Shown: positions 1,072 through 47,711, counted from the stretch's first letter. The stretch: DNA of 64,000 nucleotides from Pavona decussata (GCA_977016875.1 CDRNST010000025.1:2108001-2172000), one strand, 5' to 3'. Notes: generated by a model from the sequence alone, not told the origin. Numbers and translations are program-made.

Positions 1072-4000
1072 TTGTTGAATGAAGCTTATTTGGTTGTGAA
1101 GGTTAGGTTGATCGAGTGTTGTTCGGGTTTAATTTTTCGTTCGTGCTCGGTTAGTACTCGTAGAAGTCACCTGACAAAGCACATGCTTTCTTGTCACAGT
1201 TCGGCATCAGTTTCGGTGGTAGGTGTTGCATGTCGTAGGAGAAATTTGTCGGAAAGGTGTTTTAGCGAAATGGATACGACTAGCGATGGATATGTTTATA
1301 GTAAGTCCCTTGTATATTCAGGGACAGAAACACCTGATAAACCCTTTACTCGCCAGGGAGTAATTTCAAAAGGCGAGGAGATGTACCGAGTGTATGTCGA
1401 ATCCCCCGCTCGCTGGGGCTATGCCATTTGTAAGGAAAGCGAGAAAGTTAGAAACAAATGGAGACAAATAAAAGCCAAATGCAAAGAAATGAGAGCCAAA
1501 TGCAAACAAATCAAAGTGAAATGTGAGGAAATCAAAGGCAAATATTGTCAAATCTGTGCTAAGTACGAGCGAGTCTTTGGGAAACGCAATCAGTGTTCTG
1601 AGTGGAGCTCTCCTGAGAATAGAAAGCACACCGAAAGTGAAAGCAGATTTACCGATTGGGAAACATTTCTAAACACCCCAAGGGATAACGCGGGAGGTAA
1701 AATGAAACATAGGATATGGAGGTCAAGGTATGTCTCAAGGTGTATATTGCATTCTAGAAAGAAACGTGAAAGAGAACCTTCTAGAATTCCTTATAAAAGA
1801 GTTATTAAATTATTTGGGAAGACTAGAAAGATTCGAGACGCTGTTAAATTATACTTTAAGAAACGAATTCCAAGTTCATCTAAGTTGAAACAAGCGCTTG
1901 TCGGGTATAATCGTTATCGTTTGAGTGATCGCTTAGCAAGATCGAAGTCGGTGTTATCAAAAAGATATATTTTCAGGCAAAACTTTTATCTTTCTACTGT
2001 GCATGTGAGAACATCGAAGCATAAGAAGTCGCCATTATTATGTATGTTTGTTGATGCGAAAATGTTAAAGTTATTAAATCACCGTGTGGTTCAGAGTTAT
2101 CCGGTATCTTGTAGAGTTATATCTCTTAGTGGTGATGTTGAAGAGAATCCAGGGCCATCATCAGCATATAGTGTTGCAGTTGGTAATACAGTTTCGCTAT
2201 TAGAAACTAGGTTGTCTAGATTTGGTAGAAGTGCATTAGATGTTGGAGGAGGTGGTGATTGCTTTTTTCGAGCTGTGTCACATCAACTGTATGGCAATCC
2301 TCATTATCATCTTCATGTGCGTAACTTTGGTGTTCAGTATTTAGTGCAGAACCCTGAACAGTTTATAGAGAGTAATACTGAGTATTCATGGCAAGGATAT
2401 TTGAGTAATATGTCCTGTCAGGGAACGTGGGCTGATGGAATTATAATTCAAGCGGTAGCTAATTGTTTCAATTTATCAATTTATATTGCTGAATCAAGTG
2501 AAACGTTTAATCCTGTGACTGTAATTCAAGCAACAAATGTGACAAGAGAATGTAGAAACATTTACATTGGACATATAGGTGAAACTCATTATGTGTCCAC
2601 TGTAGAAAATAGGAGGTGTGACTTAAACAAGAATTGGTCTGGTGAAAATCTAGTTGAAAAAAAAGTTATTGACAAAAATGAAAAACATAGAGCTTACATG
2701 AAAGAATACATGAAAAAGAGAAGAGCTGATGCTGAATTTAGAAAAAAGGAGAGTCAACGTGTCTTGCAAAAAAGACGTGATAATAGTGAAATAGCTAGGG
2801 AGAAAAAGACAGAAGCTGAGAAAAAAAGTACAGTGGCAAACCTACAGGTACAATACAAGAGGGAAATTGCTAAAGAATCTAAAAGAAAAAGAAAAGAACA
2901 GAACCCTGAGCATGTAAGGGAAATTGACAAAGAATCTAAAAGAAAAAGGAAAAGAGAGAATGCTGAGCATGTAAGGGAAATTGACAAAGAATCTCAAAGA
3001 AAAAGGAAAAGAGAGAATCCTGAGCATGTAAGGGAAATTGACAAAGAATCTAAAAGAAAAAGGAAAAGAGAGAATGCTGAGCATGTAAGGGAAATTGACA
3101 AAGAATCTAAAAGAAAAAGGAAAGAACAGAATCCAGAGCATGTGAGGGAAATTGCGAAACGGTCATTTAGAAAACGAAAGGCAGAAATTAATCGAAAAGA
3201 TATCTTTAGAGTTGCACGTAGAGAAATAGTTGATGATTTCAATATAACTCCAGTAGCTGCTGAAATGGAATTGGAAAATGTAGAACATCAATTAGTAACA
3301 GCAACTAGTAGTGGTAAGTTGCAAGGACAGCAAAATAAGGATAATGTGATTGTTATGATAAATTTGTTTCACAATAACATTAAACGTGGTCCAGAATACA
3401 TTTGTACTTGTTGTGATCAGTTGTGGTATAAGTCCTCTGTAGTGAAATGTGATAGCAGCAAGTACAAGGGGTGTTCACAAAATGTTGTAGAATGTTGTCT
3501 CACTGGTTTAAGAAGTGTAGATGACGTTGAATGGATATGCAGAACATGTGACTCAAATCTAAAAAAAGGCATATTGCCCAGCTGTTCTAAAGGCAATAAA
3601 ATGACATTTCCTGATAAACCTGAGTTATTAAATTTGACACCATTAGAAGAACGACTTATATCACCTCGTATTCCATTTATGCAAATCCGTGAACTACCAA
3701 GAGGTGGCCAGTTGTCTATTCATGGGAATGTTGTTAATGTACCAAGTGATGTCAATTCAACTGTTCATTCTCTGCCAAGACTTATGAATGAATCACAAAC
3801 CATTCCAATAAAACTAAAAAGACGTCTCAGCTATAAGCATCATTACCAGTTTCAGAATGTTAGACCTAAGAAAGTGTTAGATGCAGCGAAATATCTTGTA
3901 GAGACAAGTGATTTATTCAAATCTGAAGGCATACAAGTTGAAAATTCATGGCTAGATAATATAAGTTTACAATGTATGAATGAAGACTGGAGTGAGTTTG

Positions 4001-7000
4001 TTCAAAATCCTGGCGTATTACGTAGTGATTTGCAAATAGATGATATTGTTATGAAGGAGAATTTCACACAGAGTTCATGTGAAAACAATATTTGCAGTGG
4101 TAATGTTGTTAATGCAGGCAGTGAAACAGATGATAGTGATGAATGGTGTGAAGTTGATGAACGTCCTTCAGGAGTTACAGATACACTGTTGCAGGAACCA
4201 GATGTAGTAGTAAATGCAGACAGAATTATTTCTTTTGCTCCAGGAGAAGGAAACAAACCATTAGGAATATTCATTGATAAAGATTCTGAATATCTATCAT
4301 TCCCAACTATATTCTGTGGAAAACGGAGAGCTGACAATAAGGAAAGAAAAGTGCCTGTATTATATAGTACAGTTTGCAAATGGGAGTTGAGGTGTCAAGA
4401 TAGAAGAGTTGCAATGTCTGTTCCAAATATATTTTATAAACTCAAAAAATTGCAAATCAAACGAATTCAGGATAGTGCGTGCATTTCTCTGAGAAAGTGT
4501 AAAACAAAGGGAAAAAAGTATACTGCAGGTGATCTGAAGTCAGAAAATTATCTTAATAAGCTTGTACATCTTGATGAAGGATTCAGAGTTTTAAAAAATC
4601 TAAGAGGTTCCCCTCCTTATTTTGAGAAATGCAAAAGAGACTTGTTTGCTATGATTCGTCAACTAGGCAAGCCTACGTGGTTTTGTTCTTTTTCAGCTGC
4701 AGAAACAAGGTGGACTCATCTTCTTAAAACTTTAGGTAAAATTGTAGAGAAAAAAGAGTACAGTGATGATGAGATCAAACAAATGACATGGGAGGAAAAA
4801 TCAAATCTTATACAGAAAGATCCTGTGACTTGTGCAAGAAACTTTGATCATATGGTGCAGTTGTTTTTTCGTGACATCTTAAAGAGCAGTGTCATGCCAA
4901 TAGGAGAAATAGCTGATTATTTTTACAGAGTTGAATTTCAGCAAAGAGGAAGTCCACATATTCATGGTTTATTTTGGGTAAAGGAAGCCCCAGAATATGG
5001 GAAAAGTTCAAATGAAGAAATTGCAAAATTTGTTGATAAGTATATCACTTGTCAAAAACCAGAGAATTCAAGTGAAATGGAAGATCTTGTAAATTTACAA
5101 ACACACAGGCATGCAAAAACATGTAAGAAAGGAGAGCATAAGGTATGTAGATTTAACTTTCCATTGCCTCCAGTGCCAAGGACAATGATTTTGACACCTC
5201 TTGAGAACTCCTGTTTTGATGAAGAGATGCGGGATAAGATAAAAGAAAATGCTGACAAAATAAAAGAGGTTCTTGATAGCATGAAATATGGTGAAAACAT
5301 TACATTTGGAGATTTTCTTAAGAAGTTACAATTAACTGAAGAAAGCTACATCTTAGCTGTAAGACACACCCTAAAGCGTGACACATTATTTTTGAAAAGA
5401 GCACCATCAGAAATAAGAATCAACTCTTATAACACTGATTTACTGAAAGCATGGCAGGCTAATATGGACATTCAATATGTGCTAGATCCTTATGCCTGTG
5501 CAACATACATACTTTCTTATATTACAAAAGGTCAACGAGGTATGAGTAGACTTCTAGAAAAAGCATGTGAAGAAGCTAAATCTGGTAATAATGATATTGC
5601 AAGTAGAGTTAGGCATATTGGAAATAAATTTCTAAATGCAGTTGAAATAAGTGCTCAAGAAGCTGTGTATCTTGTATTACAAATGCCAATGAGAAGATCT
5701 ACTCGTGAATTTCAGTTTATCAGTACCTCGCCTCCAGATGAAAGGGCATTTTTGTTAAAAAAACTGGATCAGCTTAAGGAATTGCCTGACAATTCACTTG
5801 ATATAGAGTCTGACAATATCATTAAACGATATCAAAGGAGACCGAAACAATTAGAAAATTTGTGTTTGGCTGACTTTGTTGCATGGTTTAATTATGTTAA
5901 AGATGAAGATACTGATGAGGGTGGTACTGCACCATCAGTCACAATAAGTGTTGATGACTTCTTACCAGAAACTAATTGTAATGACAATATTGATGATGAC
6001 CCAGTAAATAGCATTAATGTCACTGACCTTGAATATAAACCCAATGAATACAAGCTGAGAGGAGGTATGAAACTTGTAAAACGAAAGAAGTCTAAAATCA
6101 TCAGATCAGTTAGGTACCATAAAGATAAGGACCCAGAGAACCATTATAGAGAGCAATTAATGCTTTTTATACCTTGGCGAAATGAAAGCACTGACTTGAT
6201 CAAGGATTGTCAAAGTTTCCAAGAGCGCTTTGAACAGGTTAAGGATCAAATTATAACCAATAGGGAGCAATATGAATATCATTCACAAATATTAGATAAA
6301 GCAATGGAGGAGATAAATAACACGGAATGTGAGGATTTTGATAATGTTGCTCCAAATGCAGAGCATATTAATAAACAAGACTGTGTTGTTAAAGATAAAT
6401 GTAGTGAATTATTTGGTTGCTTTGAGCCTGGCAAAAATAAGCAGCATAGGGAGTATGATTTGCTTAATGACATAGGAATATTTCCAAAAAGTAATGATGA
6501 AGTGGAACTTATTACAAAGCGCATGTGTGATGATGATTATTATGCACTTGTCCGCTCTTTGAATGAAAAGCAAAGACAGTTTTTTTATCATGTGTTACAT
6601 TCAGTCAAAACCAAAAATGAGCCTGTAAGATTGTTTTTAAGTGGAGGAGCAGGAGTTGGCAAAACTACGGTAACCAATGCATTATATGAAGCAATTATAA
6701 GATATCTGAATGGGATTGCAGGAGAAAATCCAGATGATATTAAGGTTATAAAAACAGCTTCCACTGGAAAGGCATCGTTTGGCATAAGAGGTAATACACT
6801 ACACTCGACTTTTAAGATACCTATCAATAGAGGTTTTCAGTATTGTGCTCTGGATAGTGACAAACTGAATACCATTAGGACACAACTTAAAAAACTGAAG
6901 GTGATATTCATTGATGAAATCTCTATGGTAGGAAGTGGTTTGTTCAACTTTTTGAATTTAAGATTGCAACAAATAATGGGAACCAAAGAGCCATTTGGTG

Positions 7001-8706
7001 GAATAAGTGTTATAGCTGTTGGAGATCTTTTCCAGTTGAAGCCTGTTTTTGATAAGTGGATCTTTAAAAATTCTCTTATGGGCTATAATGCTTTAGCAAG
7101 TAACATTTGGACAGAGAATTTTATCCTCTTTGAGTTAACAGAAATAATGAGACAAAAGGATGATAAAGAATTTGCTAAGCTACTCAATCGCATGAGAGAG
7201 GGAAAGCATTCTAAAGATGATATAAGAATTTTGAAACAGAGACTTCTGAGAGTTAAACCTGAAGATGATCGTTATCCTATGAATGTGCCACATTTATTTT
7301 CTACGAATGACCTGGTAGAAGCTCACAACAATGCCTTATTTACCATCTCTCAAACTGATAAAGTTCAGGTCAAGGCTGTAGACATTATAATAGGGGATAT
7401 TTCTGATGATCTTAAGGAACGAATAAAGCGTAGTATCCCAGATAATCCAACAAAGACAATGGGCTTATTTTCACTACTACCAATAGCCACTGGTGGAAAA
7501 TATGATGTCTCAATTAATGTTGATGTGGGTGATGGACTTACTAATGGTGCAGATTGTGTAATAGAGAATATTGACTACAGAGTTGAAAATTCTACTAGAC
7601 CAAGTATTATTTGGGTGTCATTTTCACATGCAGATATAGGCATAAAACAACGTAGAGAAAATTGTCATTTATACAAGGCAAACACAAATAAAAATTGGAC
7701 ACCAGTTTTAGAAGTAACAAGACAATTTCAAATCAATAAAAATAGTAAAGTGCAAATTCTGCGTCGCCAATTTCCTCTGAGAGCTGCTGCTGGCAAGACT
7801 ATTCACCGCTCTCAAGGTGACACATTAGATGAAGTCGTTGTTGACTTTCCAGCATACAAAATAGAACACATGCATTATGTTGGCTTAAGTCGGGTAAGAA
7901 ATAGTTCTGCACTGCATATTTTAAACTTAAATGAAAATAAAATAAAGGTTAGTGAGGAAGTTAAACATGAAATGAGCAGGCTAAGAACAGAAGCAAGCCT
8001 AACACCCTTAGTGGTATTACACAGTATGGAGTTTCCCCAAATGACAACAATCTTGTTTCAGAATGTTCGATCTCTTCACCTGCACATAGATGATGTGCGA
8101 AGTGATTACAACATTCAAAAAGCTGATATTAACATTTTTGTTGAAACAAAACTTTGCTTGTCAGACAGTAATGATATATATGATCTAAGGGGATTTACAC
8201 TTTACAGAAATGACTTCAATTACTCTAACATAAGAAGTTGTTATGGAACTGCTGTGTACATTAAGACTGATTTGAATTGTATACAAATTCCATTAAGATT
8301 CAACTTTAATAATGTAGAAATTACTGTTATGGTTTTAAGGCATCCAATTCCAAACACTTATGTTGTTGGTATCTACCGATCGAAAACAATTGTTACAATT
8401 TCACAATTAATTGATGCCCTTAGTCACCTTCATGATGCAGTTTTGACAGAGGCTAGAGGACCTATTATCTTGCTTGGGGATTTCAATGTTAATTTAATGC
8501 AGAATACTACAGAAGTAAGGGCTCTCCAAAAATACCTGATAACAGACAAAGGATACACACAATTGATTCATCAGTATACGACTGACTACCAAACACAAAT
8601 AGATCATATTTATACTAATGTACCACAACTTGTACAATCTTCAGGTACATTAGAGTCATACTACAGTGATCATAAGCCTGTTTTTGTTTCCCTTAAAGGT
8701 GTGTGA
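1072..8706 (+). CDS. Helentron/Helitron2-type Rep-helicase-endonuclease polyprotein (2A, OTU, Zn finger, HUH Rep, PIF1-like SF1B helicase, APE/EEP endonuclease)
   Basis: Uninterrupted 2544-codon ORF. OTU motifs GGGDCFFRAVS, WADG, HYVS. Zn finger CTCC..CRTC. HUH motif VEFQQRGSPHIHGLFW and tyrosine motif YILSYITK. Helicase motifs GGAGVGKT, IDEISMV, GDLFQLKPV, EIMRQKDD, QFPL..KTIHRSQG, YVGLSR. Endonuclease motifs FQNVRSL, LGDFN, IDHIYT, SDHKP. The ORF track starts at a TTG; the likely ATG is 1183 or 1270. Confidence 0.95.
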   Translation: MLNEAYLVVKVRLIECCSGLIFRSCSVSTRRSHLTKHMLSCHSSASVSVVGVACRRRNLSERCFSEMDTTSDGYVYSKSLVYSGTETPDKPFTRQGVISKGEEMYRVYVESPARWGYAICKESEKVRNKWRQIKAKCKEMRAKCKQIKVKCEEIKGKYCQICAKYERVFGKRNQCSEWSSPENRKHTESESRFTDWETFLNTPRDNAGGKMKHRIWRSRYVSRCILHSRKKREREPSRIPYKRVIKLFGKTRKIRDAVKLYFKKRIPSSSKLKQALVGYNRYRLSDRLARSKSVLSKRYIFRQNFYLSTVHVRTSKHKKSPLLCMFVDAKMLKLLNHRVVQSYPVSCRVISLSGDVEENPGPSSAYSVAVGNTVSLLETRLSRFGRSALDVGGGGDCFFRAVSHQLYGNPHYHLHVRNFGVQYLVQNPEQFIESNTEYSWQGYLSNMSCQGTWADGIIIQAVANCFNLSIYIAESSETFNPVTVIQATNVTRECRNIYIGHIGETHYVSTVENRRCDLNKNWSGENLVEKKVIDKNEKHRAYMKEYMKKRRADAEFRKKESQRVLQKRRDNSEIAREKKTEAEKKSTVANLQVQYKREIAKESKRKRKEQNPEHVREIDKESKRKRKRENAEHVREIDKESQRKRKRENPEHVREIDKESKRKRKRENAEHVREIDKESKRKRKEQNPEHVREIAKRSFRKRKAEINRKDIFRVARREIVDDFNITPVAAEMELENVEHQLVTATSSGKLQGQQNKDNVIVMINLFHNNIKRGPEYICTCCDQLWYKSSVVKCDSSKYKGCSQNVVECCLTGLRSVDDVEWICRTCDSNLKKGILPSCSKGNKMTFPDKPELLNLTPLEERLISPRIPFMQIRELPRGGQLSIHGNVVNVPSDVNSTVHSLPRLMNESQTIPIKLKRRLSYKHHYQFQNVRPKKVLDAAKYLVETSDLFKSEGIQVENSWLDNISLQCMNEDWSEFVQNPGVLRSDLQIDDIVMKENFTQSSCENNICSGNVVNAGSETDDSDEWCEVDERPSGVTDTLLQEPDVVVNADRIISFAPGEGNKPLGIFIDKDSEYLSFPTIFCGKRRADNKERKVPVLYSTVCKWELRCQDRRVAMSVPNIFYKLKKLQIKRIQDSACISLRKCKTKGKKYTAGDLKSENYLNKLVHLDEGFRVLKNLRGSPPYFEKCKRDLFAMIRQLGKPTWFCSFSAAETRWTHLLKTLGKIVEKKEYSDDEIKQMTWEEKSNLIQKDPVTCARNFDHMVQLFFRDILKSSVMPIGEIADYFYRVEFQQRGSPHIHGLFWVKEAPEYGKSSNEEIAKFVDKYITCQKPENSSEMEDLVNLQTHRHAKTCKKGEHKVCRFNFPLPPVPRTMILTPLENSCFDEEMRDKIKENADKIKEVLDSMKYGENITFGDFLKKLQLTEESYILAVRHTLKRDTLFLKRAPSEIRINSYNTDLLKAWQANMDIQYVLDPYACATYILSYITKGQRGMSRLLEKACEEAKSGNNDIASRVRHIGNKFLNAVEISAQEAVYLVLQMPMRRSTREFQFISTSPPDERAFLLKKLDQLKELPDNSLDIESDNIIKRYQRRPKQLENLCLADFVAWFNYVKDEDTDEGGTAPSVTISVDDFLPETNCNDNIDDDPVNSINVTDLEYKPNEYKLRGGMKLVKRKKSKIIRSVRYHKDKDPENHYREQLMLFIPWRNESTDLIKDCQSFQERFEQVKDQIITNREQYEYHSQILDKAMEEINNTECEDFDNVAPNAEHINKQDCVVKDKCSELFGCFEPGKNKQHREYDLLNDIGIFPKSNDEVELITKRMCDDDYYALVRSLNEKQRQFFYHVLHSVKTKNEPVRLFLSGGAGVGKTTVTNALYEAIIRYLNGIAGENPDDIKVIKTASTGKASFGIRGNTLHSTFKIPINRGFQYCALDSDKLNTIRTQLKKLKVIFIDEISMVGSGLFNFLNLRLQQIMGTKEPFGGISVIAVGDLFQLKPVFDKWIFKNSLMGYNALASNIWTENFILFELTEIMRQKDDKEFAKLLNRMREGKHSKDDIRILKQRLLRVKPEDDRYPMNVPHLFSTNDLVEAHNNALFTISQTDKVQVKAVDIIIGDISDDLKERIKRSIPDNPTKTMGLFSLLPIATGGKYDVSINVDVGDGLTNGADCVIENIDYRVENSTRPSIIWVSFSHADIGIKQRRENCHLYKANTNKNWTPVLEVTRQFQINKNSKVQILRRQFPLRAAAGKTIHRSQGDTLDEVVVDFPAYKIEHMHYVGLSRVRNSSALHILNLNENKIKVSEEVKHEMSRLRTEASLTPLVVLHSMEFPQMTTILFQNVRSLHLHIDDVRSDYNIQKADINIFVETKLCLSDSNDIYDLRGFTLYRNDFNYSNIRSCYGTAVYIKTDLNCIQIPLRFNFNNVEITVMVLRHPIPNTYVVGIYRSKTIVTISQLIDALSHLHDAVLTEARGPIILLGDFNVNLMQNTTEVRALQKYLITDKGYTQLIHQYTTDYQTQIDHIYTNVPQLVQSSGTLESYYSDHKPVFVSLKGV
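2110..2157 (+). other. 2A-like ribosomal skipping (StopGo) motif ...ISLSGDVEENPG/P
   Basis: ggt gat gtt gaa gag aat cca ggg cca at 2131-2157, in frame. Exact D(V/I)ExNPGP consensus. Confidence 0.85.
2860..3165 (+). repeat. Coding 57-bp (19-aa) tandem repeat, ~5 units, EHVREIDKESKRKRKREN(A/P)
   Basis: gagcatgt recurs at 2908, 2965, 3022, 3079 and 3136. Confidence 0.95.
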
Positions 8707-35270: not shown

Positions 35271-36303
35271 GCACAAGGAAAAGGATTTTAAGAACAAAAT
35301 CGGAAGGATGTAGTTGTGTCAGAAAGTGTACAAACTTCGTGTTTTAAACTTTCCATACATTTGTCTGTATAGCAAATCAGCTATGAACTGCTACTAAAAA
35401 TATTTTGCTGGAAAAAAATACAGACAAATGTACAGAAAATTCAAAACACGACTGGGCGCTTTCTGACACAGTTACATTCCTCCAATTTTTTTTAAAATCA
35501 TTTTCCTAATGTCAAAAGTTTCTAATTCATGAATTTTTCAGAAGTGTTTTTCTAAAATTATTTGGCATTGGATTGAATTGGAAACTTTGGGTACTGGGAA
35601 AAGGATTTTAAGAAAAACAAATGGAGGGGTGTAGCTGTGCAAGAAAGTGTCCAGTCGTGTTTTGAACTCTCCATACATTTAACGGTATAGCGAACCAGTT
35701 GTAGACTGCTACTAAAAATAGTTTGCAGGAAAAAAATATAGACAAATGTACGGAAAATTCAAAACACGACTGGAGGCTTTTTGGCACAGCTACATCCCTC
35801 CATTTTTTTTCTTAAAATCCTTTTAACAACAACATTGAAATTGAAGCTTGGAATACATCAGAAATAAATCACTATACACAGTGTCTTTTTGAATCAACAT
35901 TAATCTAGAAATGCAGATAATATCCCCTTACTTTAACCTCTTAAGATAGTGTTGACTTTTATGCTTTACCTTCGTCTGCAGAGGGAAAATCGTTTCTCTG
36001 ATACCTGTTCCCACCATCGTATTTTGGAAGATAAGGTGTTAAATAAGCAAAATGAATGTTTTTTTTCCAAAAAACACCCACTGAAGGCAAATTGAAGTCA
36101 CTAGTCAGGCAAACATGACCCTTAAAATCGCCTTGTTTTTGTGCTTCTTGGCAGCCATTTTTTTTTTTTCTTGTTTTCTTGGTCAGCTGTGTTCCTTGTT
36201 ACAGTAGCGAGCCCGCTGAACATAAGAACTGGGAGACCTGGGGAGACTTTACATAACGAGGACGACAAGGACTGGAACCAGATTTCAGAGCCCACCGGTT
36301 TTC

Positions 36304-38233: not shown

Positions 38234-40222
38234 TATTTTTAAAAAAAAAAAACTCAACAAATTAAATCAGGTCCGGGTGGGTTTCCATGGATATCAGTAT
38301 ATCATCAGTATATCATCAATGCTGAAAAGAGAACAATGATAATGAGTTTACACTACTATAATTTCACGAAAATGGAGCAATCACATCTCTTTAGGCACTG
38401 GAACATACTCCAACTAGAGATCTTTTAAATGTAAATCTTTGAAAATGGAGTCGTGTTCATGAAAAATTAGACTGTAATATGAACAGACAACTTTACTGTA
38501 GCCCTGTTATGAAAGACTGCATATGGTAATAAACACTGCAGTCACTGTACAGGGTAGAAATCATTGAACACAACTGAGATTAAAACCACCATTTTGCTTA
38601 AATTCTACTCTGTCGTTTCAATAAACATTTGTGTTCTGTGAAAGTTGAGGAAAAACGCATTTTTTTAATAAAGAACTTTTTCATTGCAATTGCGTCTCGC
38701 GTAGACATTACTAAAATGCCGTATAAATTTTAAAAAGTACTGGTTTGCGATCCGTCGTTAAACTAGAAACTCACGTTATATTATATACTTCAGTCATGTT
38801 CAGTTAGGGGAATTGAAGGAAGGAAAGGTGTCGTAAAGATACTGACATTCCTGGTGGTCCTCGGTCAGAAATCGATCAAGAGCTTGTCACGCCGGATGGA
38901 CAGGCCGATGCAGATAGTTGATTTTGACCGCGTAAGACCTGGTGTTTAATTAAGCTCGCGACGCGATGTTTCCCTGATGGGACACAGCGGCAAAACGTCT
39001 ACGCATGCGCCAAGTTTGGGCATTTCCGGTCGAGATCACGCTTTCCGGTTAGGGTTATGTTTGCTCGGCGTTCTTTCGTTCTGTTGGAGGTTTAAAACTC
39101 TCCTGTTGTGGATCAGTAACCACATGTGAAAGATAAAGTGGACCAATGATTAAGAAAAGGTAAGCTAACCATAATTTCTTACAATTGTTGGTTCTGAAGT
39201 CGAGTGGTACTGATTCTCTTTTAAAAATGTGAATTGACACTGATTCGATGCGTGTTCGCCCGCCATTTCAGCACCAGCCCAAGTCATGAATATTTTGTCG
39301 TTGGTGAATTCGCATTTTAACACCTAGCTCTACTATTGCAGTTTGTCCGTTCTTTAACACATCAAATGTTCTCGGAAAGACTACTGCTACACATTCTCAT
39401 TGATATTTTTTTTTAATTTGACTCAAGGGAGACGCAAGGTTTCAAATAAGCAACGACGCAAGTTTCACTCAGTCAGTCATCTTGTCCGGTAAATGAATGA
39501 CCTCAAACCTTGAAAATTATGGTCGCCAAAGCATTCAACCTGAAGCGAAAGTTACAACATGCATGCAAGTATGGCTGAAAAAATGTTCTGGTGGCGAAAT
39601 AAGTTGGTGAAAACCGCCCACTTGAACCACTTCTGTTTTGACCCGGCCAAGCATGCTACTTCGCGTTTCATGGAAATTTCATTTTAATTTTCCTCTCAAA
39701 AAAACAAAAAAAAAAAAAACAAACAAACAAACAAAAAACGAAAAAACAAAAAGCAATTGGGAAAAATGCCACTGAAATGCTCGAATAGTGATTAATGCTT
39801 TTGCTGCACTAAGAATTGATAAAAAAAGGCTAGCATTTATGCAAAAGCCTAAATTTGCTCAAGATAATAAAAGATAACTAAGAAAAAGCTCGAAAAAAGG
39901 CATTGAACGGATAACTAATGCTTTTTAGACTGAATTTTACATCGCAATCAACTATTAAGCATGTCTTCATTGGAGTTGAAGGTTTTCTGTAGACTTCAAA
40001 CATGTCTTTCATGCACAAAAGAGCTGACATGTCGCTTATTTCTTTTCTTTGCAATGCTAAATCAACTGAAGCAAAGCATTATTTTGTGTTGTAAACAAAA
40101 GGCAAAAATTCGTTATAGTTTAAAACCCTTCAAGTAATGTTCAGTGCTAAAGTGAAGGTGAACTTTTAAGAGTTTAACAGGGCAGCATGTACAGTGTATG
40201 CCCTGATAGTGATGTAGCTCCT

Positions 40223-43200
40223 TCAATATTTTACAAAAGTGAGAGAGCAAATGTTAAATGAAAGCGACAGTTGTTGTTTTATGAAAAAAAGGAGTTCCTC
40301 TGCTTTGTCAACTGTTGCAATGCCAATCATGGCCCCAAGCTGACCATGTAGATGACTATCCATTATGAGGATGTTGTTGTCTCTTCCAACCAGGCAGATA
40401 GTTTTTCCATTCATAATAACAATCGCAGCGAGGTTGTCTTCTTGGGTAAGGCGCGGCAAATAAAATCCCAAGGAACTTTGAGGTACTGCTGGATTTTCAT
40501 TTATGATTGAAAGATCAAGAGAGTCTTCCAGTTCTACATTGCCAGTAATGTCAGGGAGGAAACGAATTGCATTGTCTACACTGTAGTATTGACCAGAGCC
40601 CTGTGTTATTTTATCATAAATTTGATTTCCAAGAGACATGCTGTTGATCATCAAATTTATCCAGGCGGGAGGTAGGGAATTGTGCTGGTTTAATGTCAGA
40701 ACAGACTTGTTGACAAAATAAAATTTTGAAACCAGTAAGGCTATAAAAGTGCAAGCATTTGAGCCATTTCGTCCAAATAGAGTGGACTGTGAAAATTGAT
40801 ATGGAAAGAACCAGATGATAGAAGATCCAAAGGCCATTTTCAAAATGTTAGGGCGAAAAACAGGAGTATTGACTGATTGATGTTGTGGCGGGGGTGACGT
40901 TTGTTGCTGTGGTTGTACTGGCTGTGCATGTTGAGGTTGTGGAACAGTGAATGAATCTAGCGTGTCATTGATTTTCCTTTGCCAAGCTTCTGATTGATAG
41001 TAGATTGCCTCATTACTGTTACAGTTGACGGTTACCTCCTCCTCATCATCAGGGCTTTCATTTGTATTAGTTGTTGATGGTGAAGTTGATGGCTTTGTTG
41101 GTTCCAGTAAACTTTGATTAAAAGATTGTGACAGTTTTTTCATTTCATCCAAGAGTGGTTTGGTACAGATAGGACACTGGTTGTTAGCCATGTTATAACA
41201 AGAAAGGTGAATAGTGTGGAAACAGGAAAGACGAATTGCAGACTCAGTTGTGTTTACAGTACAGTCTTTGAAGTCACAAATTTTTAAATTGTTAGGTAGA
41301 GTGTTTGTGCTGTTGCTATTTTGTCTCTCAAATGTATAAGCTAATGGAAGTGCTTTACTTGTGATATCAGTGTTAAAAGTTTCAAGATGGTACTTCCGTT
41401 CTCCGACAGGTTTCCCTCTTGCATTTGTTGTTGGAGGAATCTGAAAAACAAAGAAATAGTCTTGTTTTATTTTCTTACTATTGCAGCTACCCATTTGACT
41501 CATTAGGTTTATTATTTATTTACACATTTGCCCAACACTTGTCCAGGTGTGACAACATCAGGACACAGAGTAGTCTACTTGAGGCTATCTTTGTCACAGC
41601 TTAAAAGGGTCATTGGTTTGGGAGTGAAAATGCATGTCAGTGTTTCAGGGATGAAACAGATGTATTACCTTAATCTGTTTTGTCAAGACACAATAAAAGT
41701 TCTAAGTAAGTTATTGAGCCTAGAGTTCTTTTCAATTCAATCTTTAGAGCATGTAACAACATCATTAGATCTTAGTGCTGCAGCCAGGCTTGTAGCAAGA
41801 GTATCCAAGAGGCTTGTCATTTTGAACATTTTGAAGGATTGAGGGAAATTCATCTGCACCTACACAACTAGACACCCTTCTGGTGAAAACCTTGCATCCA
41901 GCATTATTTTTGAGCTACAGTTTACCATTATTGTAAATGTTATTGTGAAAATTAGTATGATAGAAATACGAGCAACCAAAGGGCTTGTGCCAGCCTCCGA
42001 GTAATAATATGCTTATGACTTTACCATTCTTGACTTCCCAATATTCTGGCCTACTCTCTTGATTATGGCAAGCAAACTCTCAGCTGTCTTCCAAACAACC
42101 ATCTCCAAACTTTTCTCAGACATTCCTCGGCAATAGGGCTTGACAAATTCGGCCATGAAGGCTTGGTTTGACTTAGACATGGCTAAAGTGATTGCCTTTT
42201 TACGTATTTCCTCAGCACAATTGTGGGCTTGGGTTGCTGCTCTTAGTACACTATGCCATATTTCCACCTTCTTTTCAGTTATTAGTGACATCCAGTTTTC
42301 TTTGCAGGAGTAATAGCAATTAAAATTGAATTTTTGATGGTAAATGTCACTGAGCATGGAAAGAGTGGACCTGTCATAATGATGGCGTTTCCAAATAATA
42401 AACAACAAAGCAAATCGAAACATGACAGAAATGTAAGTATTCAGGTTCCCAGAGCGGAACATCACTGGATAGTGGTAGAAAGATAAAGGAATGACTTCGT
42501 CCAAAAGGTGCAATATACATGCAAACTCAGCGTCCTTGCACAGTTGAAATTTCTGAAGAACCTTTGTTCGTAGCTGTAGCCATCCCAGGAAAACAGCGTT
42601 TATTAGTAAATTTATTCTGAAAGGTTTAGGTTTATGTGGAAGCTCTGATCCAAATGTTTCCTTATAGACGTTGGACAAAACAAAGTGGTAGATTTGCATA
42701 ATGTCTTCTTGCACATTTAAAGTTACATGAAAGGGACCCTGTTCTGGAATAATGGAAAGCAAAGCTGATTCTTCATTCACTTCCTGGGCAATAAGTTTCT
42801 TAAAGTAATACCAAGTAGGCCAGTCTCCTGGGGTTGGAAGAGCATACTTCTCAAGATACAGTTTTAGTTGAGGAGCAACCTCGAAGGAGTGAGACAAAGC
42901 ATTCAGGTAGTCTTCCTTGCTTTTCAAAGACTGTTCAAATTCGTCTATTAGTAAACATGAATCCAAATGGCTAAGGTCATCATTTGATCTTCCTGAGTAC
43001 ACCCTGGTGACAACAAAAAGTGACATTTGTAATAATTTTAACCACACCAAAAGGAACATACATGTAAACCTAAACTTGACTCTTTGATGTTGCCAGCAGT
43101 TATTAATTTTACAGCCCATGCAAAATGTTTTGTAGGAGTAGGTAGCACAGCTAAAGTGTACATGTTAGTCCAAAGGGGTCTTGAGGATATAAATTAACTA

Positions 43201-46200
43201 GTGTGCTTTAGTGGCAAAATTGTTGGCCTCTGATAAATTTTGAAAGGGCCACTATAAACTGTTTTGATGAAAATTATAGCCCCTTTATTGTTTAGAGGCC
43301 TGTATTGATTTCATGCAATGTGCAGAGCAAACTTTAAACGTGCTTTCAACTTCGAGAGTCTGGTTTGGTGAAAATGTATTTTAAACTACAGTATGTGCAA
43401 GCAACATTTAGACATTGACAATACCTAAATTCTTTGAGCTGAGCTTGGATGTTCTTTGGTTCCATTGTTCGTTGCTCTTCTCTCATGCTAGCCAGAAATG
43501 TTGATTTAAGTGTCCCCATGTGCTCTTGGACAAGTTGAGAAATATAGCTAATATCAATTCCACCTCTACATGTCTTGTTTTCACCTTTGGAGCTGATTGT
43601 AACAATTCTATGGATTTTGGACTTGTCAGGGGGTAGATGAATGGCTGGTACAGTAAGTTGAATGTCCAGCAAATTGGATGCCATGTGTGTAGCAAGGGAC
43701 AGTTTCATGTTAGCACCGGGTAGCCGTATGGTCTGAATGTTATGAAAATCATCCAGCAAGTAAATCATTAAACACCCATCCTGTAAACAAAAGTTAAAAT
43801 TAGTCTGAGGAATTGTGTGAATACAATCTGCATATTTTTTTCTGCTTGTAGGTTTTTTTGCTTACTGTCTTATCCAAAAATAGGTGGACACTGCACCTTG
43901 TCAGATTTGTTGGAAACCATGGGGTGACATCACTTGTGTATATTTCAATTCCCTTAACTAGATCTGTTTAAGATAACCTCTTTCAGGGAGACAGATAGAG
44001 CTGGTCCCAAGGGAGACTGCCTTTGAGAGAGTTGACTGTACTCACTTTGATTGCATTTGAAATCTTATTGTGAAGGAATTTTGGCTGCTCCCTAAGTAGC
44101 ATGGATTTATGTCCATCAACATCTCTTGGACTGGTGCTGAAGCCTAAAATTCTGCCAGAATTTACCACATCTCTGGATGCCCCATGTTGTTGAATAAATA
44201 ACCCTTCCTCCTTGTGCATTAGATTTGTCTTCTGTGACCTGAAATAATGATAATAAATACTATTTGTAGCCCCTTTTTACGTACACTGTAAGTAAAAATC
44301 TGAACAAATTATTAACATTTATCTTGTTTATTTCATTTCAGGGTTTTGATATGATAGTATATACTGAATGTGGAGATCTCATGGTGAAAGAAGAATCAAT
44401 TGTGTAATCGTATTATAGGTAGATTCTAGATTTGTCTGCTGTCATGGTTGATAAACAAGATTGTTTTAATCACAACTTTGGAGTGTTCCTCATACGCAAG
44501 GCAAGCGAAAAAATATACCTGAGTCAAGTCAAGTCAGCTTAAAAGAAACTTAATATAACGTGATTTATTGTGTAATCAAGATTACCGGAAATATGCTATG
44601 ATGTGCAACAAAACAACTGTTCTCTTTTCTTGTAATACACGATGCTCATCGCTTAGTCTTGGATCATCTCGCAAAATAGAATGTAAAATAAGATTAAAAA
44701 GGCCAGGTGCATTTTTCTCTGCAAACTTTTTCATCTCTGAGGGTGTGTACAGTGGAAGTGCATTGTTGCCCTCATAGTGTTGGTGCAAAGCCCTCTGGAA
44801 TCTCTCTACCAGGTAATCAAATGAATTTTCTGAAAAATATAACGAAAAAGGGATGCAGAATGTTTTATCTTTATAAGTACATGTAGAAACTAATAGATAG
44901 ATAGATAGTTTAATGATCAATACATCGCAGCCCGAAAGCTGAATTGCGTAATTACAAATAATAAATCGACTAATAATGGTTATCACATACTCCATCAAGA
45001 TGTTGAAATAAACTCTCACAACTAGTACCATAAGAAATATGTGGAGGATAATAATATTCTCCATGTATTTAAATAATAGTGTTCAGAATATGCATGTTCA
45101 TACTGGGGCTTAATTGCATTTCCACTGGGGTTGGGGTTGCTTTTGTGTAAGGTACATAGATGGTTGTTGTCTCCTGTAGCAGATGTTAAAAAAATATCAC
45201 AATATCGATATTACTTATTTTTGCAGTGTAATATACATGTTGATAATCGGTGTAATCCTTGAGAAAGATGTTTGGTAGAAATGCTGTTACTGAAATATTT
45301 TTTTTTTATTTTATTTTGATTCTATTTACTTTTCTTTTTTTTTGGGGGGGGGGGGGACGCTAAGTAGTTGTGTAGTTAAACTGACCTGATGAGTCTTTGA
45401 AAACTGTTTCAATGCTGTTCCATACATGTCTTTCTACTAGGACATCTCCATTACAATTGACTTTTACAGCTCCAAACGAAGTTGGAATTGTCCTCCAGGT
45501 GTCCTGATTTGGAAGCACTATTCCACAAATCTCTTCCAAAGATTTAAGTCTTTGGAAGAGATAGTAGAATAGCTTCTGCACTTGAAGAATCTTTTGTCCA
45601 GGGTTGTCTTCACTGCTGGGCTGCAAATTCTTGTATAATTTTATGATAGGAGAGGCAGCAAATTGCCAGATCTACATAAAGTAAAAATGCTCATTTGACA
45701 AAGAATACTGTTCTTTTTATGTTGTTTTGTAAACAAGGCAATGATAGAGATTTGATAAGAAATTATCAATTACTAGCTGCAATATAAAAGTTCTAAAGTC
45801 TTGCTGTAAGCCACTGACAGGTATGAGTGTGTGTGAGAAATAATAAAAATAAATTTGAGTCCTAAATGAAAGTCACTCTCAATTAATGTTTCAGTTACCT
45901 TTTGAAGTTCATCAGCTGAGGTTTGTTTAGCCTCTATGTCCTGTGGGAGAATCACATATATAAGAATTGGGATCAGGTAATATTNNNNNNNNNNNNNNNN
46001 NNNNNNNNNNNNNNNNNNNNNNNNNNNNNNNNNNNNNNNNNNNNNNNNNNNNNNNNNNNNNNNNNNNNNNNNNNNNNNNNNNNNNNNNNNNNNNNNNNNN
46101 NNNNNNNNNNNNNATAATTCAGGAAAAATGCCTTTACTTTGAACCAAAATACAACAGCTATTTTTATTAAGGTTTACTATTTGGGGTTGCAAACTTAGCA

Positions 46201-47064
46201 ACTTTAATAATGAAAAAGTTATCTTTGTTTGTGAAAGTAAAAGGCAAACTTAAAAATTATGGAACAAATCATATAAAGAGCAAGGCAGGGTATGTTTGAT
46301 AAAGAAAGACCGTGCGTTTTGAAATATTGGAAAGGAAAAATATATTTCTCTGACCGTGAAACCAGCCTTGCTCTTTATATTATCTGTTCTGTAATTTATT
46401 GCTGATTAAATCCTTTACTACAGGATCCGATATTTTTATTTTATCACGGTTGCCCTTGCAAGCACAGCTACTGCTCTTCACTTAAAAATTATGCACAACC
46501 CAGAACCCAAATTGGACAATAAAGCTCAGATTAATGTTTCCATATGCCATTAACCTGCGCGTCAGCTGTGTCAATTATCATTAGCAAAGACATGAAACTA
46601 ACCTTTTGTTTTGAAGTACGAGCCTCTTTCGGTTTATACTCTACATGCGTGGTGAACTTTTCTTCCTTGTCTACGTTCTCTGCACATTTGTTGCACCACC
46701 TTGTTCCCGGACGATACGGAACATTACCTGTTTTCCCAACAGCGTCCAGCACCGCATAAAGACGTGAAGGTATTCCGTTTTGGTGGAGGGTTCGCGAGTG
46801 GTTTTCTCGAGGAACCGAACACCGGTTGTTTTCTCTCCTTATTTCGTCCCAGTGGACCCGGCAAACTATTGAGCCAACTGGAAGTTCAGCGGCCCTGGCT
46901 AACTGAGGTGTCAAGAAGTAATGACGGCCTCCGCATTTCCGTTTCCCTGCCCTTTTACCACACTTCTCGTCTTGCGAGGAACAACATTTTAACAACAGGA
47001 CGACAACAACCACGGACAACAAAACTTTTCTTCTCAAGCGCGAGCAAGTCGCATCTTCGAGCAT
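40223..47064 (-). CDS. Predicted 8-exon, ~1259-aa putative DDE transposase with RING-H2 and C-terminal cysteine protease domain
   Basis: Exons 47064-46603, 45940-45899, 45671-45386, 44829-44586, 44238-44046, 43780-43425, 43003-42025, 41440-40223. All introns are GT..AG and phases 0,0,1,2,0,2,0 join in frame (3780 nt). The assembly gap in intron 1 could hide sequence. Confidence 0.8.
45985..46113. other. Assembly gap (N run)
   Basis: Run of n characters. Confidence 1.
46268..46382. repeat. Penelope-like end fragment in intron 1, related to 16310-16480
   Basis: gaaagaccgtgcgttttgaaatattggaaaggaaaaatatattt is the near reverse complement of 16317-16360. Flanked by the inverted repeat atataaagagcaaggc/gccttgctctttatat. 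Confidence 0.55.
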
Positions 47065-47711
47065 GGTTTTCGTACTTGGTGCAAGCACCAAACCCCTTGG
47101 TGCAAAGGTTTGAAAACAGCAAAATAAATTTACTCACCAGGAAAACAATTTTTTTGCTTAAGTTTGTTTCGTAACTCTTGAGTTTTGTTTTTAAACTTCG
47201 CGCGACGGGAGTTTTTTGTTTACGCAATAGGTTTTAATAGCTAACCGGAAATACGACACCGACCGGAAGTTCAGTGGGTGGCACATGCGCATTGCGTTTT
47301 GCCGCTGTGTCCCCTGATGGACGACTAAAGGTAGGCTATATCTATCGTTATCGATGTTTATCTAACACTTTGAAATGCCATCAAGTCTTAGAATGCGCAT
47401 TTCTGAAAAATATGTTATTTTAGCTCGACATTTTGAATAGAAAGTTTATGTCAAATGCAAGTGCTCGGCACTAACAATTCTGAATATCGAAGAAGCTAAA
47501 CTTGCTCTTGGCTCTCCCTCAACCAACTCTTACGTTTCTTTTATGCTTTCTAAACATCTCGCGTACACTACAACCATAACTATCATAACTCGATATACGT
47601 ACACTAAACACTAATCTATTCTTAAATTGCACCATACAATCCAAGAACAACGCTGTACTAATATACGGAGTTCAATTCTGTTAAATTAAAAAAGTATTCA
47701 ATTTTTGAATA

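Follow-up and report, generated by a model that had tools for sequence, protein, structure and literature searches.

The 64,000-nucleotide stretch of Pavona decussata DNA analysed here (hereafter the window, with positions counted over its full length) contains, at positions 38981-47311, what is very probably an autonomous-looking class II DNA transposon of the cut-and-paste type with terminal inverted repeats (TIRs) that has moved recently. Its length of 8331 bp is nominal, an assembly gap of estimated length being located inside it. The two TIRs are complementary at 17 of 17 positions and give the element GAC...GTC termini, and the similarity between the two ends continues past this perfect stretch. 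Directly outside both TIRs, the 9-bp sequence ccctgatgg is present as a perfect direct repeat, i.e. a target-site duplication (TSD). The TIR 17-mer occurs at only two places in the window, even if up to three mismatches are allowed, and the number of matches expected by chance, as estimated with a dinucleotide-preserving shuffle, is 0.09 on average. In addition, a pair of TTCCGGT motifs is positioned 44 and 62-63 nt inside each terminus in an orientation that is mirrored between the ends, and these two subterminal spots account for 4 of the 8 occurrences of this heptamer in the window.

Between the TIRs, a gene of eight minus-strand exons was delineated (Table 1). The exons have GT..AG borders and compatible phases, each of them is open, and together they comprise 3777 nt, or 1259 codons, which upholds the spliced transposase of about 1259 aa that an initial annotation of this DNA had proposed. 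The total was obtained by phase arithmetic; the exons were searched singly, and the full-length layout was taken from natural full-length relatives in Ptychodera, Branchiostoma, Lingula and Oscarella. When compared by tblastn, these full-length relatives match exon 1 and exons 4 to 8 in collinear order, and the joins between exons 5 and 6, 6 and 7, and 7 and 8 rebuild motifs that are continuous in the relatives. The exons encode a Cys/His-rich N-terminal domain, helical regions, a core with candidate catalytic residues in D-D-E order and, in exon 8, a RING-H2 finger followed by a domain predicted to be a viral-tegument-like deubiquitinase (VTD). The latter two domains had been missed in the initial annotation.

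Table 1. Positions of the element's features in the window, with strand and the observations that apply to each.
Feature	Position	Strand	Remarks
Left TSD copy, ccctgatgg	38972..38980		single copy in the empty allele L005
Left 17-bp TIR, begins GAC; 3' end relative to the gene	38981..38997	+	similarity to copy 2 ends exactly at 38981
Two subterminal TTCCGGT, 44 and 63 nt from the left end	39024..39049	+	candidate transposase-binding sites
VTD domain (predicted)	40226..40861	-	catalytic Cys 40751-40753 (GSNAC), Asp-x-His 40352-40360 (DSH)
RING-H2 finger	41165..41278	-	C-x4-C ... C-x-H-x2-H-x2-C ... C-x2-C
Exon 8	41440-40226, then stop (to 40223)	-	homology; RING-H2, low-complexity linker, VTD
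Exon 7	43003-42025	-	homology; second catalytic D in GDWP (D 42823-42825), GPFH 42727-42738 (H 42727-42729), helical insertion, catalytic E in VEIWHS (E 42262-42264)
Exon 6	43780-43425	-	homology; beta1 with the first catalytic D, LLDDFHN (DD 43748-43753)
Exon 5	44238-44046	-	homology; helical region N-terminal to the catalytic core
Exon 4	44829-44586	-	homology; conserved helical region
Exon 3	45671-45386, alternative acceptor 45620	-	open frame and splice signals only
Exon 2	45940-45899	-	14 codons; open frame and splice signals only
Assembly gap	45985..46113		129 N, estimated length, sole N run in the window
Exon 1	47064-46603	-	homology; Cys/His-rich N-terminal domain C...C...CRVH...C...WCxxC
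Two subterminal TTCCGGT, 44 and 62 nt from the right end	47244..47268	-	candidate transposase-binding sites
Right 17-bp TIR; 5' end relative to the gene	47295..47311	-	reverse complement of the left TIR; ends match the other copies
Right TSD copy	47312..47320		direct repeat; single 9-mer in the empty allele

Insertions at other sites and an empty allele

Further copies of the element were found in public assemblies by means of the exact proteins of the exon open reading frames (ORFs). Together with the window copy, this resulted in four independent insertions that share the same termini and are each flanked by a perfect 9-bp TSD of their own (CCATCAGGG, GCGGTGGCC, GCCCCCGGC and CCTAAAATC, written in gene orientation). 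The insertion at the window site, with TSD CCATCAGGG, is present on ctg133263 of ERZ25073805 and on ctg101889 of ERZ25073751, and is 100% identical where fetched. Copy 2 (L001/L002; GCGGTGGCC) was found in the same two assemblies and is 99.1% identical to the window copy over 6.5 kb. Copy 3 (L004/L103; GCCCCCGGC) is located in ERZ26692669 and is approximately 94% identical to the window copy, and copy 4 (L107/L108; CCTAAAATC), on ctg133300 of ERZ25073805, is 99.0% identical, with one mismatch in a TIR. An empty allele was found as well: ctg99444 of ERZ25073751 (L005) contains both flanks of the window site at 99.4% identity and one CCATCAGGG, but no element. Since filled and empty alleles of the window site are thus present in one sample, ERZ25073751, the insertion is polymorphic. 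Three features expected of class II TIR elements were thus observed, namely inverted repeats at fixed ends, a TSD whose length does not vary, and an unoccupied site with a single target.

These observations agree with the initial annotation, which had described an intact element bounded by TIRs and a 9-bp TSD and had considered it young and possibly active: the copies are 99% identical, their exons are intact, and three further TIR/TSD-bounded copies and an empty site exist. The initial annotation had also allowed for two other parses of the ends, namely GGGAC TIRs with a 5-bp TSD and GGAC TIRs with a 7-bp TSD. Both were ruled out because the flank changes immediately outside GAC/GTC in the three other copies. 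It could further be argued that the locus is a single-copy host gene, domesticated or not, with terminal repeats that arose by chance, since several animal genomes list its relatives under no other name than 'uncharacterized protein'. However, the sharing of termini by four unrelated sites, each with its own 9-bp TSD, the clean empty site and the low chance expectation for the 17-mer (0.09) make this explanation so improbable that it can practically be set aside in favour of a mobile element.

The differences between the copies were also informative with respect to the coding capacity of the element. A comparison of the window copy with copy 2 over the 2979 nt of exons 4 to 8 revealed 5 differences (3 synonymous and 2 non-synonymous changes, and no stops), as compared to 21 mismatches and 7 gaps over approximately 3560 non-coding nt. 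Between the window copy and copy 3, exon 1 displays 22 synonymous and 12 non-synonymous changes. Because of this synonymous excess in exon 1, and because exons 4 to 8 are conserved above the non-coding sequence, we conclude that the coding sequence has been under purifying selection.

A few minor features of the insertion sites were noted. The empty allele alone has a 14-bp indel flanked by TTA (L005:1909-1922), which is located 8 bp from the target 9-mer, beside window position 47329; this is probably an unrelated polymorphism rather than an excision footprint. The second base is C in each of the four TSDs, and the first is either G or C. Against a genomic GC content of about 36%, three of them are GC-rich (6-9 of 9 positions) and the fourth is AT-rich. 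A preference for GC-rich targets, as hinted at by the three TSDs, is contradicted by CCTAAAATC, and four insertions are too few to define one. Searches of JGI metagenome contigs with the TIR 17-mer gave 96 matches, one of them on a contig labelled as human-gut metagenome; all were dismissed as chance matches, the identity outside the 17-mer being at most 38% and about 100 such matches being expected by a rough estimate from the size of the collection. No indication of human sequence was seen in the window.

Domains of the predicted protein

The initial annotation had placed the candidate catalytic residues in four motifs (LLDDFHN, GDWP, GPFH and VEIWHS), the coordinates of which proved to be exact (Table 1), and the catalytic spacing in the window protein is approximately D(168)D(186)E. 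To position these motifs on a fold, we used an AlphaFold model of the 943-aa relative from the sponge Oscarella pearsei (P0016), built with a family alignment of 65 rows (A1). The model has a pLDDT of 84.6 and a pTM of 0.77, and comprises beta1-beta3 (residues 333-374), beta4 (494-500), beta5 (525-529), an all-helical block (531 to approximately 686) and a helix (687-699). When the family alignment is laid over the model, the first D of DD-x-H falls in beta1, the D of (G/A)DWP after beta4, the motif G-P-(L/F)-H directly after beta5, and the E of VE-x-x-HS-x-x-R on helix 687-699, such that an all-helical insertion of about 155 residues separates beta5 from the helix with the catalytic E. The second D, the E and the His of GPxH are nearly invariant, and the first D of DD is present in all aligned sequences that cover it. 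In a Foldseek comparison with the PDB, the top 43 matches were all Hermes, RAG1 or P-element transposase structures, with probabilities of up to 0.98. By sequence, the core did not match any PDB entry, either as a single sequence or as a profile (A3), and profile A3 retrieved only the same family from a set of 5.8 billion proteins, without distant relatives that carry a Pfam label. Altogether, the model and the family-wide conservation support the predicted RNase H-like DDE fold with an insertion domain in the canonical arrangement, in line with the D/D/E assignment of the initial annotation.

The RING-H2 finger in exon 8 has all eight ligands (C3H2C3) at residues 76-113 of the exon 8 ORF, the first pair being C-x4-C. 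The family profile A4 matched the RING domains of Arkadia, RNF165 and RNF38 in the PDB with E-values of 4e-7 to 2e-5. The Pfam cut-off for RING domains is reached by the relative P0145, whereas the window's own Pfam scores are below it. After a low-complexity linker, residues ~215-426 of the exon 8 ORF form a region that was modelled with a pLDDT above 90. Foldseek matched this region to the viral tegument-like deubiquitinase structures 8ADC, 8ADB and 8ADD, and to the cytomegalovirus M48 protease 2J7Q, with E-values of 1.5e-7 to 6e-5 and a probability of 1.00, and profile A4 matched 8ADB with an E-value of 0.024. The active site would consist of Cys 251 in GSNAC and D382-S-H384; A4 shows hardly any variation at Cys 251 or at the nearby His 386. 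The C-terminus of exon 8 is thus predicted to be a papain-like, viral-tegument-like cysteine deubiquitinase. An Asp-x-His signature sets the VTD class of deubiquitinases apart (Erven et al. 2022, PMC9741609). The same study reported that VTDs are carried by Helentrons, and that cnidarian genes fuse VTDs to 'transposon-associated domains', albeit that no element was characterised (PMC9741609).

Based on this layout, the following mechanism can be proposed. The protein of about 1259 aa would bind the ends of the element through its N-terminal Cys/His-rich domain. This exon 1 domain, which matched neither Pfam nor, as profile A6, the PDB, is likely to be the DNA-binding domain, and the paired TTCCGGT motifs at 44 and 62-63 nt from the termini are its likely contacts. 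The D-D-E centre, formed by the D of LLDDFHN, the D of GDWP and the E of VEIWHS, would then cleave and rejoin DNA, with integration at a 9-bp stagger. By analogy with the VTDs of Helentrons and the RING of RAG1, the RING-H2 and VTD tail probably edits ubiquitin marks. It could stabilise the transposase by shielding it from degradation, as has been proposed for Helentron VTDs, or alternatively act on chromatin or on repair factors at the DNA break.

Several points weigh against the interpretation presented so far. Transposition and splicing are deduced here from the sequence, and the role of the RING and VTD domains in transposition is conjecture by analogy. With respect to the core, the Foldseek E-values are weak (0.009-0.1) and the TM-scores low (0.2-0.44), although low TM-scores are expected because the query is a multi-domain protein. 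Moreover, the modelled protein is a sponge relative that is 31-34% identical to the window protein rather than the window protein itself, and the putative D-D-E triad was placed by secondary structure and alignment. Within the gene model, exons 2 and 3 lack cross-species support, and the gap in intron 1 (46602-45941) could conceal sequence, including an exon. This gap touches no exon, with 490 nt between it and the donor of exon 1 and 44 nt between it and the acceptor of exon 2, and the splice signals around the intron are a donor AAG/GTTAGT after 46603 and a pyrimidine-rich CAG before 45940. An ORF that spans the gap (45773-46201) was rejected as an artefact because the 129 N were read as 43 codons. 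The interval between the matches to exons 1 and 4 amounts to about 20 residues in Branchiostoma and about 88 in Ptychodera, as compared to 109 codons (exons 2 and 3) in the window, and we found no conserved segment between these matches in the Ptychodera and Branchiostoma relatives that is absent from the window. Indirectly, the short interval in the relatives speaks against the gap containing a conserved exon. The least certain point of the gene model is the start codon. The first 27 codons of exon 1 (46984-47064, minus strand) include a hydrophobic run, VLLSVVVVVLLL, that is absent from the Ptychodera and Branchiostoma relatives, and an exact database look-up of the exon 1 product starting at ATG gave no entry, the gene caller having chosen another start. 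Upstream, at 47132-47140 on the minus strand, there is a donor-like ctg/gtgagt with its site at 47137, which could belong to a non-coding 5' exon.

A defect could be hidden in the intron 1 gap or in exons 2 and 3, which lack homology support, and an insertion polymorphism reflects past movement rather than present activity. The window copy might therefore look intact and nonetheless be non-autonomous or non-functional, being moved by another copy or belonging to a family in which no copy is active now. We consider this unlikely because every exon of the window copy is open, the catalytic, RING and VTD residues are all present, and the copies differ less in their exons than in their introns. 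Furthermore, exon 1 and exons 4 to 8 are open in copy 2 as well, and copy 4 gave the same ORF calls as the window copy for exons 7 and 8. An apparently autonomous element remains our preferred interpretation.

Family range and relation to known transposons

A phmmer search with exon 7 against 1.84 billion representative proteins resulted in 708 clusters with E-values of 1e-3 or lower. The named relatives are from Ptychodera flava, Branchiostoma belcheri and Lingula anatina and include only 'uncharacterized' or 'hypothetical' proteins; further relatives are sequences of Nematostella and, from the sponge Oscarella pearsei, a transcript ORF that carries no name. Judged by these matches, the family is widespread in non-vertebrate animals, spanning sponges, cnidarians, brachiopods, hemichordates and amphioxus. 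No Pfam cut-off was reached by the seven minus-strand exon ORFs that were scanned (all but exon 2) or by the plus-strand ORF 46701-47174. Likewise, no transposase model of Pfam apart from DUF6589 matched any of the 65 members of A1, and specifically there were no matches to hAT, MULE, P-element, KDZ/Zisupton, Plavaka, CACTA, piggyBac, Harbinger, Merlin or RAG1 models. Since the core is invisible to Pfam and members are named 'uncharacterized', genome annotations are likely to miss copies of the element or to present them as host genes.

The DUF6589 match concerned the beta4-beta5 region of the Oscarella core (E-value 8.9e-5) and, with 21.8 bits, fell short of the cut-off, which is 27. This match was obtained for 1 of the 65 members and for none of nine further whole relatives, and nine core segments that were scanned apart added none. 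DUF6589 is enriched in rust fungi and may represent fungal Academ-type transposases. The resemblance to Academ/DUF6589 transposases that the initial annotation had noted remains a lead, reflected in one sub-threshold match that was not reproduced in the other members scanned. In agreement with the initial annotation, the exon ORFs scanned contain no Pfam match to a helicase or an XPG nuclease, and we found no second long, domain-bearing ORF in the element.

The TSD length narrows down the possible affiliations: 9 bp excludes hAT, P, Transib, Zisupton and most other superfamilies, and leaves MuDR, Merlin and AcademH. Merlin elements have TSDs of 8-9 bp and MuDR/MULE elements have TSDs of 9-10 bp. 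AcademH elements have TSDs of 9-10 bp (PMC10045372) and AcademX elements of 3-4 bp, so that a 9-bp TSD fits only AcademH within Academ. In addition to TSD length, the element shares with AcademH the long single-gene organization in marine invertebrates and possibly a remote DUF6589 link; it differs in having no helicase or XPG nuclease, and in termini that start with GAC whereas the curated bivalve Academ-1 consensus begins with TAG. The host range of the present family, which includes cnidarians, amphioxus, hemichordates and lophotrochozoans, overlaps with the hosts reported for Academ. The element could thus belong to an Academ branch near AcademH that has lost the helicase and gained the RING and VTD domains, rather than to a new lineage. 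The 9-10 bp TSD of AcademH (PMC10045372), the Oscarella match to DUF6589 and the overlap in hosts speak for this possibility, while the score of that match below the cut-off, its confinement to a single member, the missing helicase, XPG nuclease and second gene, and the GAC start speak against it; we regard such an Academ origin as a serious option, though not as a probable one.

Structurally, the closest counterparts are hAT (Hermes), P and Transib/RAG1, which were the best structural matches and which share with the present family the RNase H-like DDE core, the all-helical insertion between beta5 and the E helix, and a conserved x-x-His motif directly after beta5. There is, however, no sequence similarity to these groups by PDB profile or Pfam, the TSD is 9 bp as compared to 8 bp for hAT, 7-8 bp for P and 5 bp for Transib/RAG1, the C-terminus additionally carries the RING and VTD domains, and the motif reads G-P-x-H instead of the C/D-x-x-H of hAT, P and Transib/RAG1 (PMC9587614). 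With respect to hAT in particular, the TSD was 9 bp and not 8 bp in all four insertions, and no hAT dimerisation domain was detected by Pfam among the 65 members. For P elements and THAP9, the likeness is structural only, as there was no Pfam match, including to the THAP finger, and the TSD is 9 bp instead of 7-8 bp. Similarly, no KDZ match was obtained by Pfam among the 65 members and the TSD is not the 8 bp of Zisupton/KDZ elements. MuDR/MULE elements resemble the present element in TSD length, and MULE belongs to the C/DxxH group of DDE transposases (PMC9587614), but the family has no Pfam matches to MULE, Mutator DNA-binding or SWIM models among the 65 members scanned, and the TIRs are short.

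The C-terminal domains provide further comparisons. The VTD of the element has in common with Helentron VTDs and with the herpesvirus UL36/M48 deubiquitinases a papain-like fold with Cys and Asp-x-His (PMC9741609), and in Helentrons, too, the VTD is carried by a mobile element. Here, however, the predicted VTD is fused to a DDE transposase instead of Rep/Hel and is paired with a RING-H2 finger, and its sequence identity to solved VTDs is 11-17%. As in RAG1, a RING and an insertion-bearing DDE recombinase are combined in one polypeptide. RAG1 carries its RING finger at the N-terminus, whereas the finger is C-terminal here, there is no sequence similarity, and the TSD lengths differ; the RING-plus-DDE layout of the element most likely arose independently, as a parallel to that of RAG1.

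With no Pfam transposase match and no named relative, and with Academ compared only through DUF6589 and published descriptions, the family is left unclassified. We found no paper describing it, and the Pfam, named-relative and literature comparisons all fit the view of the initial annotation that the family is undescribed or poorly described. Tentatively, it may represent a currently active, undescribed DDE lineage at the superfamily level that is structurally allied to hAT, P and Transib/RAG1, lacks any detectable relationship to them by sequence, and takes its own ubiquitin writer and eraser to the site of transposition; this bolder reading is a serious option, though not a probable one. It is rare for an animal DNA transposon to be encountered with copies still intact, termini that are defined and an empty site that segregates. 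The element is a realistic candidate for activity assays and, if active, for development into a new gene-transfer vector whose TSD is 9 bp. VTD deubiquitinases were previously known from Helentrons and herpesviruses, and their apparent fusion to a DDE transposase and a RING-H2 finger makes it possible to test whether ubiquitin signalling is manipulated by mobile elements as they transpose.

Neighbouring elements in the window

Apart from the element described above, the window contains a Helentron-type rolling-circle transposon that looks intact, with one uninterrupted ORF of 2544 aa (1072-8706, plus strand). This ORF encodes an OTU protease, DUF6570, Helitron_like_N, a PIF1 helicase with an additional match to Helraiser (7LCC) and, at the C-terminus, an AP-type endonuclease; a sequence search against the PDB revealed no VTD domain in it. 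A stretch of about 10 kb is duplicated, segmentally or in tandem (11531-21118 and 25829-36287), with a period of approximately 14 kb and 96-98% identity over 8.5 kb, and each of the two copies includes an ORF of 379 aa (18017-19156 and 31880-33019) with a weak match to an RPA OB-fold. Between the two duplication copies lies a fragment of a PIF/Harbinger transposase (22358-23065, plus strand) with HTH_Tnp_4 and the start of DDE_Tnp_4. Taken together, the relatives of the transposon and these neighbouring elements point to a marine invertebrate host.

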